Positions 6,746-49,647 of a stretch of 64,000 bases of DNA are shown here, piece by piece. The stretch is from Ylistrum balloti. Taxonomy: Eukaryota. The DNA is taken from the NCBI RefSeq assembly GCF_031769215.1, contig NW_026781921.1, positions 1,426,001 through 1,490,000 on the forward strand, written 5' to 3'. The notes beneath the pieces are model-generated. The model did no database searches. It worked only from the letters and a program-made list of their open reading frames with translations, and was not told the DNA's origin. Within the stretch, counting starts at the first letter, position 1; the number at the start of each line of letters is the position of its first letter. Position numbers and translations under genes: made by a program.

Positions 6746-6946
6746 TCATCTGCTGAGGCTGTGAGAGCGCTCCCGGTCGCCATCGTTAGTTGTCTCTTCT
6801 TCCGCTTTAACTTGATATTTGGCAAAGACACGATGCATCATGGCCTGCTTGAGGGTTAGTCGTTCAGCTGGGTCATACTCAAGCATCTGATTGATGAGAT
6901 CAAACAAGTCGCGATGATCAGGGTTTTCTGGGTCTCTAAGATACCG
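6746..6946 (-). CDS. CLK2: Alternative terminal exon S (canonical end): RYLRDPENPDHRDLFDLINQMLEYDPAERLTLKQAMMHRVF...DRERSHSLSR*, 66 aa
   Basis: Acceptor tttgttctttgcag|CGG, phase 0. Encodes subdomain XI (MLEYDP..R.T). The RERSHSLSR terminus resembles my recollection of the Drosophila Doa C-terminus. Confidence 0.93.
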   Translation of the reverse strand, partial: RYLRDPENPDHRDLFDLINQMLEYDPAERLTLKQAMMHRVFAKYQVKAEEETTNDGDRERSHSLSR

Positions 6947-8395: not shown

Positions 8396-9499
8396 ATGCC
8401 TACAGAGACATATGTCGTAATTTTTCATTAATGTGTACCAGTATTAACCATTTTTGTGCGACTAACAAATCCAGTGCTCCCGTTATCTCTACGTACTTCA
8501 CACATTTCTCATGTCATTCTAAAGTAAAAGCTACTTCATACAAATTCCTTATACATGCAAAAACCTAGTATTTGGTACTTCCAATAATTTTCCAATCATC
8601 ACTATTAGATTTTCCCTGTTCATATTCAAGATGTATTATTTCCCTGGTGGGATACAAATATGATATCAGACTTGACCATCTCAAGAGCAAGATGAGGTAA
8701 ATTCAATCCAAGAGCAAATACTCTCAAAGATTTCCAAAAATCATACAAAGAAACTCATTCAAAATCAGTCACACCAGACACTTTTTTAAGATTTATTTTT
8801 TTAAAAGAACATCTCATCAGGAATCAATATGAATCCAATTATTTCAAATGAAAATAGTTTTCTCTTCAGTTATAAAATCGATATAATCACATAAAGGTTT
8901 CAGGTATAAATCTACACTAAAGAAAGCTGTTCAGCATTTATCACCAGATTCAAGACTCATCCGCCATTTGTGACAGTTATATCTTTAATTTGATAAACTT
9001 CAATAACACTGGATATCTTGCATAAAGTTGTGAATCCTTTATTTCGATGACACGTTGGAGTTATTGATAGATTAGTAGGTAAGTATACATGTATGTATTT
9101 AATACAATCTTTCTAATTATAGATCTGTTTTCTAACATACCAACAAGTCACTGACAACCAAGTCCATGCCATTCAAAACCTTCTGACAACACACAACACT
9201 TCAAGTCATTCGCAAAAGATCAAGCCATTTTAGACAACCAAAACCGACCATACCTGACAGGATGGTGACACATGCATTAAACACCAACTTAATATGCCTA
9301 TGGCAACGAAAACCTTCCTTTTGCAATGCCATGCTGTACTGCTTCATTAACAGTTTTGCTTCTCTCCACAGTTGACATTCGTCTACCTATCTAAATATTT
9401 TCCCTTAGTTCTTCTGTCTACATATATTTCACTGTCACCTTTCCTTGTACCTATGATTTACCGTCCATGTTAACAATGCTAGAGTCATGCTTAGTTTTA

Positions 9500-9700
9500 C
9501 CCACCTCAGTTCCCTTACACATCATACCCTTCCAAAATAAGTAACATCATTACGATTCACTTATAACACAATGATTTACCTATGACAGTAACACCTCAGT
9601 TCCCTTACATATCATACCCCTCCAAAGTAAGTAGCATCATTATGATTCGCTTATAAAACAATGACTTACTCATGAAAGTAACACCTCTGCTCCCTTGCCA
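9500..9700. repeat. ~90-bp tandem duplication, ~2.3 copies
   Basis: cacctcagttccctta repeated at ~90-bp spacing. Confidence 0.8.
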
Positions 9701-10008
9701 CATTCTTTTCCTATGCAACTATTATCTTTTCCATTCCTTTACAACACAATGTTTGACTTGTGCAGGTAATATCTTCTCCATTCATTACCAAACCATGCTT
9801 TACCTAAGTAATATTTCTGTTCATTACCACAACATGCTTTACTTAAGCAAGTAATATTTTCTCTGTTCTCTTACCACATCATGCTACATCTATGAAAAAA
9901 ACTTCTGTTTTTTTACCACACCATGCTCTATTTGATGAGGACATCTGTAATCATGCTCACTCCATAGCCAAGTAGAGTAAAATATCCACCTTCTATGATT
10001 GGTCACTG

Positions 10009-12555
10009 TCATACAGTCTCTATCCCACTAGATGGATTAGATTGCGGTCCTCCATCCGGTGCTTGTGTTGTGTAGACCGGATCACGTTCAACAGTGTTAT
10101 CACAACCAGAAGGCAAAATGACCGACACACAATTGTCAGCATCGTCTATAACCAAATGCTCGCCACCAGAATTAGTCCTTTGAATATTCTGAATGGAGTT
10201 GGAATCTGCTACTGAGGGAGAGCCAAGGTCAGACATCACAGGACTGTTTGGAGTTTTACCTGTGAATATATTGCTAACAGCGATACCAGAAGGCAGAGGA
10301 GAAGCATGAACCCGAGACGGCTCATGCAGCACCAGTTCGCCTTCCACAACACTGGGATCGGGATCTGGGTCAAGGCCCACTTCAGATAAAAAACACTGCT
10401 CTGATGTGGGTGCCTGTTTTTTACTCCGTTTCCTGTGTGCACGCTTAGCAGTTTTCTTCTGTGTTTTATTCTGAGCTTCCTCAACCTTGACCTGAGTGTC
10501 ACTGTCCAAGGGTGTGTCTGAGAGAACAGCTGTGTAGGCCACAATGGGAGGTTTCTGTATTGGGGATGGTTCAAGAACCATGGTTTGAGTTGGCAAAGTC
10601 ACCATATTCCTTGTATCAGTGGGATCATACACCAATGCTGCTGGCTGCTCTAGCACTACAGTAACAGTATCGGGTGTTGGATCAGTCACAGCAATCACTG
10701 GAGTAGGATTGGCCACTGCGATGACAGGCGGGGGAACTGTCACCGTCATCACAGGCCCTGCAGGATTCATCTCTACAATGGTCTTGGCGGTGTCTCTGAC
10801 TGCCTCCTGCTCACAGTCAGCACCTTGGGATAAAAAACCTTGCTGTGAATCTGTCTGGCTGGTATCTTGCTGTTCTACATCTCCTCCCACTTCTGTGTTA
10901 CATACAGTGCTTGTCTCGCCTTCTGTTTCATTGTTGCTGAGATTAGTTTCAAACGAAAAAGCATTAGCTCCTGATGAGGCAGTGTCAGGGGCCTCTGCAG
11001 AGGATGGAACCTCAATAATGGGGCTAATCGGCTGGTGCTGTGACATATTTAAGAAGACACTTGGGGTAAAAGTCTGGCTTAGCAACAGCTTGAGTGGATC
11101 TTCCTCAGGCTTCTTCTCCTTTTCTTTAGGAACTTTCTCTGGTTCTGACCAGGATCTTTCCGTCACTTCCACTTTGAGATCTTGTATTGGCCCTTTGACT
11201 GGTTCTTCTGGTTTCTGCTGGTGATTAAGCTCGGATTTTGACCTATCTACAGAGACAGGCTTAGCCAGTGCAAGCTTGAGCAGTTGATATGCTGACAGTG
11301 GTTTCTCTTCTCTTTTTGGGACGGGTTCCACTTCCAGTTCTTCCTCATGTCCAGACACATGCCCAGACTTTCTACGATCACCTCCTCCACGCTCTCTTCG
11401 CCGACGTTGGAGACGTTCAGCAACTGTTTCTTCAGGGTCGAATCCAGGTGACTCACCTCTCTCAGAGATGGAAGTTTTTCGACTAGTTGACTCATCAAAA
11501 CTGTCAAAGCTTGCAGGCTTTTCTATTTTGTGTGTACTAGATTCATCCTTATGTGAACTACTGTCTTCAGACCCAAACATCTGTCTCCAGGTTCGGATAG
11601 CTGATCCCTTGTCCATTCGTGATGGAGACACAACTTTGACCTGTAATCTGTCAGGTGACAGTTGCTGTTGTTCCGGAACCCTCTCTACAACCTCCTCTGC
11701 TGGCTGTTCTTCCTCCATGTTCTCCTCCATTCTTTGTCGCCATGATTTCCTTCGAGTAAAGGCATCGTAAGTCTTTGGTTCCTCAGCAGCTGGTGAAGCC
11801 TCTTTTTCTTTTTTAGGTAATGTCAATTCAAGATGCTCTGGTTCAGCAACCTCTAGCTCTTTCTTCTGTCTCCATGCTTTAATGCTGAGCACCTCTGGCT
11901 CCGCGGCCTTGGTATCCACCACCGTTGTAGTCTGCTCTGTTGGTGGATTAGAGGCATAGTCATCCTTGGGTTTCTCTGTTTCACTGGCCATTTCCATCTC
12001 AAGTTTGAGACGCCATGACCTTGGCTTGTTAGGATCCTTAGGAGGAGACATTTTTGCTTGTGCTTCTGCAGCCTTTCTTTTCCTTTCTTTGTATGTTACA
12101 TAGCCACTTGTTTTCTCTGGTAGTACCTTGTTTGGCGTTTTCTGTTTCTTTGGAACCACCTCTGGAACTTTCTCCTCTACTTTCATTGGAATATTTTGTG
12201 CCACCTCTTGACTAGAACTCAGCTCTGTATGGTTCTGTTCAACATGGCTCACCTCACCAGAATCTTCCCTAGATTTGGCAGCTGATCTTGACCGGCGTTC
12301 TGAGGATTCCCTTTGTGATCCATTGGTTGGGACAGTCAGTTCTGCCATCTTTCCTTCTTCTAATGAAGCTGATTTTTTCCTCTCGGCTGGGTTGTCTAGA
12401 GGAAGACGTTCTGCATAAAATTTCCGACATGGACCAAAGAACGGATGGTTCATTGCCTCTCGTAAAGTAATGCGTTCCTCTGGTATGTACTCGAGCATCA
12501 TCTCAGTCAACTCAATCAGTTGCCGATGTTCTGGCCCCTTGTCTCGAATGTAATG
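10009..12555 (-). CDS. CLK2: Alternative terminal exon L: HYIRDKGPEHRQLIELTEMMLEYIPEERITLREAMNHPFF followed by an ~800-aa E/K/P/S/T-rich disordered tail (848 aa total, ends GIETV*)
   Basis: Acceptor ttgttgtttttcag|CAT at 12556-12558, phase 0. The stop-free 2547-nt frame is GC-richer than its surroundings. Its first ~40 aa align with kinase subdomain XI. Confidence 0.85.
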   Translation of the reverse strand, partial: HYIRDKGPEHRQLIELTEMMLEYIPEERITLREAMNHPFFGPCRKFYAERLPLDNPAERKKSASLEEGKMAELTVPTNGSQRESSERRSRSAAKSREDSGEVSHVEQNHTELSSSQEVAQNIPMKVEEKVPEVVPKKQKTPNKVLPEKTSGYVTYKERKRKAAEAQAKMSPPKDPNKPRSWRLKLEMEMASETEKPKDDYASNPPTEQTTTVVDTKAAEPEVLSIKAWRQKKELEVAEPEHLELTLPKKEKEASPAAEEPKTYDAFTRRKSWRQRMEENMEEEQPAEEVVERVPEQQQLSPDRLQVKVVSPSRMDKGSAIRTWRQMFGSEDSSSHKDESSTHKIEKPASFDSFDESTSRKTSISERGESPGFDPEETVAERLQRRRRERGGGDRRKSGHVSGHEEELEVEPVPKREEKPLSAYQLLKLALAKPVSVDRSKSELNHQQKPEEPVKGPIQDLKVEVTERSWSEPEKVPKEKEKKPEEDPLKLLLSQTFTPSVFLNMSQHQPISPIIEVPSSAEAPDTASSGANAFSFETNLSNNETEGETSTVCNTEVGGDVEQQDTSQTDSQQGFLSQGADCEQEAVRDTAKTIVEMNPAGPVMTVTVPPPVIAVANPTPVIAVTDPTPDTVTVVLEQPAALVYDPTDTRNMVTLPTQTMVLEPSPIQKPPIVAYTAVLSDTPLDSDTQVKVEEAQNKTQKKTAKRAHRKRSKKQAPTSEQCFLSEVGLDPDPDPSVVEGELVLHEPSRVHASPLPSGIAVSNIFTGKTPNSPVMSDLGSPSVADSNSIQNIQRTNSGGEHLVIDDADNCVSVILPSGCDNTVERDPVYTTQAPDGGPQSNPSSGIETV

Positions 12556-12793
12556 CTGAAAAACAACAATACAATACACAATATACGACTGGAAGTAAAC
12601 GCTGGAATTTTTTTTTATATATAAAATTTTGAAGAATTTACATAAACCATTTTCATATTTCTCACAAGTATTTTGAAATATCTTTAACAATTGTGATAAT
12701 TTTCATATAAACAATAAACTTTCATTAACAATCACATAATATATTGTTGAAATTTATTTGAACTTATTTAAAACTCTTCATCATAGCAACTAT

Positions 12794-13262
12794 AATAAGA
12801 GACCCCAGAGGGATTTTGGCGTCCACTATCATATGGTCTAAACTGTTCCTTTATCAGTTGCATTTTTCCATTATATTTTCTCCTTTCCCATCCCTTGAAA
12901 AATGTATGCAAAGGCGGAGACCAAGAAGAACCTAAATATCAATTTTGATAATGATTAATCCAAATCATCTATAGATATAATTAGAAGGGGTTGAGGGTAG
13001 ATATGTCTGAGAAAGACACATCCAATACTTATAAAGAAATAGCAAAAACAAACTTGACTTTCAAAACTGAACATGGCAGCTTGTGGACCATTTTGTTTCT
13101 TCAATCAGTCATGAAACTGAAGATGAAGCTTCCTATGAGATTCAAGAAAGATCAATAAAAAAAAACAGGAACAACAAGAATTGTTAAAGGATGGATGGAC
13201 AACAGGTGGACAATGGACCACAAAGGCGATTTGAACAGCCAACCATCTGATGGCAAGCTAAA
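12794..13262. mobile_element. Degraded non-autonomous dispersed element
   Basis: aataagagaccccagaggg start; ggatggatggacaac microsatellite and gcta end, the same architecture as 7541-7796. Confidence 0.4.
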
Positions 13263-13649
13263 ATTTCTCTCTTTTTCTAAACAAAGGATGACATAATTTA
13301 TCAACTTCTAATCAACACAACATCAATTTCTTTTATTGATTTTCAAAAGAATAAACATGATTGATACAGTTACAATGTGTAAGATCATGATGTGTACTAC
13401 GCCCATAAGTTAATGACATAAGGAAACTGTAAAGAAACAAGATAATCTATTTAGTATATGTTCTTCAGATATTGAATCTAATTGGCAAAAAGTTCATCCA
13501 TTAAGAAATGCTATTTGCCAGTACTATAACAAGCTTCTATTGGTGTCACTACCACCTCTTTAATTACTGACACTTACTGATGTAAACACGCTCATTAATG
13601 ACCGTCATTAACTGGTGAAATTCCGCTAACTAACGACTATCATTAATTG

Positions 13650-49479: not shown

Positions 49480-49647
49480 CGCGATATTCTGGTAGTCATT
49501 ATCATGTTTGTAGCTACTATAGCTGTACTGATTGTTGGTGAGAGAGCCATTGAGGCCAGATGAACTGGACGCTCCTGACAGGGTTTGTGTTGTAGGCATC
49601 ACTGCCCATTCCCTTATACCCGTCTGACTAAGGGCATCCACTCGCAT
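49480..49647 (-). CDS. Candidate alternative N-terminal coding exon MRVDALSQTGIREWAVMPTTQTLSGASSSSGLNGSLTNNQYSYSSYKHDNDYQNIA (56 aa)
   Basis: The open frame ends exactly at consensus donor GCG|gtaagt in phase 0, matching the 85-nt exon. There is an upstream in-frame stop at 49687-49689. Confidence 0.5.

Follow-up and report, generated by a model that had tools for sequence, protein, structure and literature searches.

CLK kinases are normally described as an arginine/serine-rich (RS-rich) N-terminus followed by a kinase domain that ends the protein, and they act on RS-rich proteins in nuclear speckles. Long isoform-specific, low-complexity extensions of the LAMMER core occur in the Drosophila Doa isoforms and in the long CLKs of insects and crustaceans; the Doa-type extensions are N-terminal. 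Molluscs add a very long C-terminal tail to the CLK through an alternative last exon. The background of the CLK family is reviewed in PMC10952393. The locus considered here lies in 64,000 nucleotides of the scallop Ylistrum balloti (contig NW_026781921.1, positions 1,426,001 to 1,490,000; this whole stretch is the window). It is the long terminal exon of a CLK/LAMMER kinase gene, which resembles the Doa-type isoforms in joining a LAMMER core to a long isoform-specific extension, but differs from them in that the extension is C-terminal and derives from one alternative last exon. Within this tail, a short Trp-Arg (W-R) motif is real, reiterated and selected at the amino-acid level, and it is not periodic. 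With moderate confidence, and judging from the sequence, the W-R copies are taken to be reiterated short binding elements of the short linear motif (SLiM) or molecular recognition feature (MoRF) type, which would act multivalently.

The reiterated Trp-Arg motif and its conservation

Exactly five tryptophans are encoded in the exon, with codons at 12013–12015, 11872–11874, 11740–11742, 11587–11589 and 11149–11151; the first four are spaced 47, 44 and 51 codons apart, and all five fit [KR][STA]W, precisely as the original prediction had them. Arg at +1 and Gln/Leu at +2 accompany four of the five, and these four copies (W1 to W4) share a consensus of 10–12 residues, [KR]-x-W-R-x-[KRM]-hydrophobic-[E/G]. 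Chance is ruled out: when the exon protein is shuffled 20,000 times, no shuffle holds four copies of [KR][STA]WR[QL] (the maximum is one), and the maxima for WR[QL] and [KR][STA]W are two and three copies, against four and five observed. For all four copies to show the full context, given five Trp, the analytic probability is ~5e-15, the pattern having been defined post hoc. Furthermore, each core is situated within ten residues that together carry a net charge of +2 to +5, and the next sixteen residues carry −2 to −7. The exon and its Trp-bearing elements are located in the window as follows.

10009–12555, minus strand: long alternative last exon of the CLK/LAMMER kinase gene, placed by its acceptor and reading frame; 848 codons plus stop.
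11986–12087, minus strand: W1 island, exon residues 157–190; Trp codon 12013–12015.
11830–11901, minus strand: W2 island, exon residues 219–242; Trp codon 11872–11874.
11710–11769, minus strand: W3 motif, exon residues 263–282; Trp codon 11740–11742.
11563–11610, minus strand: W4 island, exon residues 316–331; Trp codon 11587–11589.
11134–11160, minus strand: fifth Trp, not a member of the motif set, in E-R-S-W-S-E-P-E-K; Trp codon 11149–11151.

The copies were compared in an alignment of four scallops (Ylistrum, Pecten, Mizuhopecten and Argopecten), and codons were compared between Ylistrum and Argopecten. The W1 island consists of a basic helix (ERKRKAAEAQAKM), the segment PPKDPNKP and the core R-S-W-R-L-K-L-E-M-E-M; its 34 residues are invariant in the four scallops, with no amino-acid change and 16 synonymous codon changes. 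In the W2 island, the core I-K-A-W-R-Q-K-K-E-L-E-V places an Ala before Trp, and all 24 residues are invariant, with 12 synonymous changes and again no replacement. W3, with the core R-R-K-S-W-R-Q-R-M-E-E, is recognisable but more variable than the other three; its core is conserved in the scallops apart from K/R and Q/E variation. It is also the only copy that has Ser/Thr before Trp in all five sequences, namely the four scallops and the distant ortholog P0122 described below. The W4 core, A-I-R-T-W-R-Q-M-F-G-S-E-D, represents a subtype with M-[FY]-G-S-E-D after WR, and its island of 16 residues is likewise invariant (nine synonymous changes, no amino-acid change).

About 15 invariant islands of at least eight residues exist in the tail, and W1, W2 and W4 are situated within three of them; the linkers between the motifs are only 24–50% invariant. 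Across the whole exon, the nonsynonymous rate (dN) is 0.149 and the synonymous rate (dS) 1.57, and the resulting dN/dS of 0.09 shows that the translated sequence is under purifying selection. The dN amounts to 0.42 for the three linkers compared with 0.05 for the four W segments pooled, with dS saturated. In the W1, W2 and W4 islands together (74 codons), no amino acid is changed and 37 codons differ synonymously. In addition, the Arg codons (CGT, AGA, CGA and AGG) belong now to the CGN and now to the AGR family, depending on the copy and the species. Such unchanged residues under extensive synonymous change, together with the switching Arg codons, show that the constraint acts on the peptide and not on the RNA or DNA.

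An exhaustive HMMER search with the array profile against 1.84 billion representative proteins recovers two clusters only, the scallops and P0122. P0122 is a 934-residue open reading frame on a 5.5-kb genomic scaffold (scaffold_3596 of the ENA metagenome assembly ERZ23487774). It shares its acceptor position with the scallops and is therefore the same exon in another bivalve; its first 520 residues show approximately 40% identity with Ylistrum. Three motifs are present, with spacings of 21 and 86 residues compared with 43–51 in scallops: a W1 counterpart, SRPWRKRLEE, located after an ERKRKA island; a W3 counterpart, RRKTWRQRLEE (local alignment z 7.6); and a W4 counterpart, AMKAWRTMYGSED (z 15). 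W2 has no clear counterpart in P0122; MAFFT places the second P0122 motif as W2, but pairwise scores assign it to W3. The residue before Trp is Pro in the W1 counterpart, Thr in that of W3 and Ala in that of W4. Between P0122 and the scallops, W and the next R are invariant and position −2 is always basic, so that the W-R core is preserved across a divergence at which the linkers can no longer be aligned. The pattern is not one in which orthologous tails lose the Trp motifs and keep their flanks. Over all 19 motif instances, +1 is Arg and −2 is Lys or Arg. The fifth Trp stands apart, since it has no Arg at +1 and is itself replaced by Arg in Mizuhopecten and P0122 with the flanking ERS.SEPE kept; the original grouping of all five tryptophans into one set does not hold.

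The array had also been described as a cryptic repeat of about 47 residues, and this description has to be given up. The likeness of the units is confined to approximately ten residues around Trp (z 1.7–4.1 for 26-residue units), the linkers are unrelated, the three copies of P0122 follow other spacings, and at the DNA level Tandem Repeats Finder gives only micro-repeats of 10–12 bp, none with that period. The weak likeness of the copies outside the core is what old duplicates would show, and the copies could accordingly be a functionless leftover of old internal duplications or of composition, or else a conserved RNA or DNA element. Neither explanation accommodates motif counts that no shuffle reaches, an island dN of ~0 with saturated synonymous sites, Arg codon families that differ among copies or the lack of a DNA tandem repeat of that period; both are very improbable and close to refuted. 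What stands of the earlier description is the array itself, because a reiterated, protein-constrained motif in a disordered tail looks like an array of short linear motifs.

Predicted helices and possible modes of action

For the array region alone, with the five-sequence alignment, AlphaFold predicts seven short helices. Four of them lie over the Trp motifs, with a predicted local distance difference test score (pLDDT) of 63–84: W1 at about 80, W2 at about 64, W3 at 74–83 in an 18-residue helix, and W4 at 69–75. The linkers have pLDDT below 50 and the predicted template modelling score (pTM) is 0.21, which indicates that no domain is formed. Adding the kinase domain to the model leaves the motif helices in place but lowers their confidence, to pLDDT of 45–64. 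These models bear on the proposal that the motifs fold back on their own kinase domain as pseudosubstrate or docking helices and thereby regulate the long isoform. The basic residues around Ser/Thr do resemble sites of basophilic or SR-directed (serine/arginine-protein-directed) kinases, and the tail is joined directly to kinase subdomain XI. However, the drop in helix pLDDT with the kinase domain speaks against such folding back, and the models give no sign of the motifs docking there, although this is a weak test, with no contact or predicted aligned error output and a shallow alignment. The proposal appears quite unlikely.

As binding elements, the copies would work as follows. The Trp would be the anchor residue and the flanking Arg/Lys would provide the specificity contacts, each copy (four in scallops, three in P0122) being predicted to form a short isolated helix and lying in a basic block that an acidic block follows. 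With several copies, the long isoform would be able to bind a single type of partner repeatedly, or several molecules of it. The freedom of copy number and spacing to vary suggests that multivalency matters and geometry does not. Several points weigh against this interpretation. The motif occurs in five sequences only, four of them closely related and the fifth from a metagenome. No RNA evidence was found for the long isoform in Ylistrum balloti, where the only run that holds the exon is DNA. The AlphaFold alignments are shallow for the tail, and the helices are not amphipathic, with a hydrophobic moment of 0.17–0.44, no higher than in shuffles. Finally, none of the motif classes tested (RVxF, MyPhoNE, B56, LIR and 14-3-3), applied as regular expressions to the five tails, matches all copies.

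Phosphorylation had been proposed as a switch common to the array, each copy being a docking site whose Ser/Thr before Trp would receive a phosphate, perhaps through autophosphorylation. In scallops, three of the four copies do combine a Ser/Thr at −1 with a basic −2 position. In particular, W3 reads RR[KR][ST]W in each of the five sequences and matches both RRx[ST] and a 14-3-3-like pattern; a second conserved site, RRKSG, is situated downstream. However, the same patterns do not fit W1, W2 or W4; W2 cannot be phosphorylated next to its Trp, because Ala occupies position −1 in all scallops, and in P0122 this position is Pro at W1 and Ala at W4 with W-R kept. Such replacements show that Ser/Thr is not the defining position of the motif. 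The AlphaFold models also contain no hint of the motifs approaching the kinase domain. As a general rule the switch is therefore unlikely, and only at W3 does it stay plausible; phosphorylation may modulate some copies at most, with W3 as a conserved candidate site for basophilic kinases and 14-3-3-like binding.

The alternation of charge around each Trp, from a basic block (+2 to +5) to an acidic one (−2 to −7), raises another explanation, in which basic Trp helices and acidic linkers are stickers for self-association or for partitioning into condensates or speckles, for example with RS domains, via cation–π contacts and charge blocks. The composition of the tail, 30% charged and poor in aromatic residues, would suit such stickers, as would the differences in copy number and spacing between lineages, and the action of CLKs on RS-rich speckle proteins points in the same direction. 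Stickers, however, tolerate drift around the aromatic residue, and here islands of 16–34 residues are invariant at saturated synonymous change; moreover, three or four stickers in 800 residues are few. This explanation is improbable on the present evidence. Self-association via charge blocks and intramolecular regulation are both possible but less likely than the binding-element interpretation.

A more specific version of the binding-element interpretation would make the W-R helices an undescribed class of docking motif of the scallop lineage, tethering the long isoform several-fold to a lineage-specific partner outside the SR-protein circuit and, together with the E-T-V/L end of the protein, giving a scaffold-bound CLK a non-nuclear role; this version is speculative and rather doubtful. 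For the binding-element interpretation in general, the Trp-Arg motifs are among the most constrained parts of the scallop tail, and this strong constraint makes them obvious handles for finding partners of the long isoform. They also provide a case in which the function of a disordered region may sit in a few anchor residues as copy number, spacing and linkers turn over, with a reach limited by the confinement of the motif to one bivalve lineage.

The long exon, its host gene and other molluscs

The coding part of the exon occupies 12555 to 10012 on the minus strand (848 codons), followed by the TGA stop at 10011–10009; a ttttcag acceptor (12556–12558) precedes the frame, and the window is free of N. 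The exon encodes the last 40 residues of the kinase domain, which read MLEY.PEERITLREAMNHPFF, and then a tail of 808 residues attached straight to subdomain XI. The tail is 30% charged with few aromatic residues, and it is mostly disordered and highly charged. By word-index search, the exon protein matches residues 361–1208 of the NCBI model LOC132564128 of Ylistrum balloti exactly, and orthologs are present in Pecten maximus, Mizuhopecten yessoensis and Argopecten irradians with 71–76% identity across the exon. A Pfam scan of the exon protein gives nothing meaningful, just a sub-threshold RNase_PH match.

Upstream, 11 coding exons are located at 18.5–49.6 kb of the window. The LAMMER kinase signature is invariant in all four scallop proteins, which places them in the CLK/LAMMER family; PF00069 and PF07714 are recorded for them, and their top non-scallop matches are CLK and Doa proteins with 70–79% identity over the kinase domain. 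The host gene is the single CLK/LAMMER splicing kinase of the scallop. In the long gene models of Ylistrum (49480–49647 of the window), Pecten and Mizuhopecten, the predicted first exon is RS-less (MRVD...); in the gene model of Argopecten, the long tail is preceded by a predicted RS-rich N-terminus. A canonical invertebrate CLK C-terminus (…DRERSHSLSR) lies at 6746–6799 on the minus strand, with its stop at 6746–6748, approximately 3.3 kb downstream of the stop of the long exon and on the same strand. The presence of this short ending further downstream implies that the 848-codon exon is either skipped or used as an alternative last exon. Hexamers resembling polyA signals are found 908–1214 nt past the stop of the long exon.

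The sole public run that holds the exon consists of DNA contigs (~10x) spanning the exon–intron border. Over 4.5 kb it departs from the window (9246–13443) at 13 positions and by one insertion of 2 bp, which is compatible with a second haplotype or a different individual. A second Ylistrum-like DNA data set has five single-nucleotide polymorphisms in the coding exon; three are synonymous, and the Trp array contains none.

Other parts of the tail are conserved as well. Invariant Trp-less islands occupy 11257–11466 on the minus strand (exon residues 364–433), with dN/dS of 0.02. One of them is 35 residues long and contains an FDPEE stretch, an RRRRER run and RRKSG; a further one, LSAYQLLKLALAKP, is predicted to be helical (pLDDT 84), and P0122 retains both. 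The last three residues of the protein (10012–10020, minus strand) are E-T-V in Ylistrum, Pecten and Argopecten, and Mizuhopecten has E-T-L instead; this resembles a PDZ-type C-terminus of the form [DE]-x-hydrophobic; P0122 and the oysters end differently.

Long C-terminal CLK tails of 270–860 residues exist in oysters, mussels, a pearl oyster, many snails and a chiton, all starting after the same kinase subdomain but almost unalignable with one another; the oyster tail forms a cluster of 450 near-identical members in Logan assemblies. Like the scallop CLK, these proteins thus have a long C-terminal tail, but one that cannot be aligned with the scallop tail and is without the motif. These tails contain zero to seven Trp, none in a WR-motif context, and in 131 other CLK proteins a hidden Markov model of the motif nowhere exceeds 1.5 bits, compared with 19–26 for true copies. 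Profile–profile comparison of scallop with oyster tails is limited to one island of 16 columns, CFL..GLD, which lies at an equal offset and has a low probability, and comparison of the scallop lineage with heterobranch snail tails yields no alignment (E 0.56). The FDPEE/RRRRE islands had seemed by eye to be common with snails, an impression that profile–profile comparison does not support. The oyster helices ARRARR and RRR[AT]R[LM] were considered as ancestral counterparts of the motif, but they score −2.6 to −4 with the motif model and the relationship is speculation. Word-index, exhaustive HMMER and JGI metagenome searches together return just the four scallops and P0122; the WR motif is restricted to the scallop lineage, and outside Pectinidae no tail other than that of P0122 is known to be related to the scallop tail. 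A literature search found no paper on the molluscan CLK C-terminal tail or on the W-R motif.

Comparison with known motifs and systems

Several described motif systems share features with the W-R array, but there are clear differences in each case. The MyPhoNE motif of PP1 regulators has the form RxxQ[VIL][KR]x[YW]. This motif class is discussed in PMC13545437. W2, W4 and the W4 counterpart of P0122 carry [ILM]-[KR]-x-W, the second half of that pattern, in a helix. By contrast, W1 and W3 have no aliphatic residue at this place and no conserved RVxF partner motif accompanies the array: the full MyPhoNE pattern has no match in the five tails, and RVxF-like matches occur in two scallops only and are not conserved. 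Neither the LIR pattern [DEST][WFY]xx[LIV] nor the B56 pattern [LMFW]xx[IVL]xE matches at any Trp motif. A calmodulin-type basic amphipathic helix was also considered and rejected, as the hydrophobic moment does not rise above that of shuffles and the C-terminal half of each helix is acidic. A basophilic or 14-3-3 mode-I-like site (RRx[ST] followed by a hydrophobic residue) is matched by W3 in all five sequences; the array as a whole departs from it, as the Ser/Thr becomes Ala or Pro in some copies and orthologs.

In proteins of the GW182/TNRC6 type, multivalent Trp motifs interact with Trp pockets on Argonaute and CCR4-NOT. In both systems, Trp is the key conserved residue and several copies are present in disordered sequence with flexible number and spacing. 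In GW182/TNRC6, however, Trp is non-helical and its neighbours are Gly, Ser, Thr or acidic residues, whereas the scallop motif has Arg at +1, Lys/Arg at −2 and a predicted helix. Membership in the GW/WG Argonaute-hook family is rejected on the same grounds, the basic flanks being present in 19 of 19 instances.

The array also resembles the SLiM and helical MoRF elements that are reiterated in disordered tails of signalling proteins. The scallop core differs from these in being known only from scallops and one other bivalve and in matching no tested class. In common with them, it comprises conserved islands of 10–30 residues with helix propensity in a fast-evolving disordered region, several copies at variable spacing, and one aromatic anchor flanked by charged residues. 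A short conserved island within a disordered, faster-evolving region, by which such elements are recognised, is found in the scallop tail.

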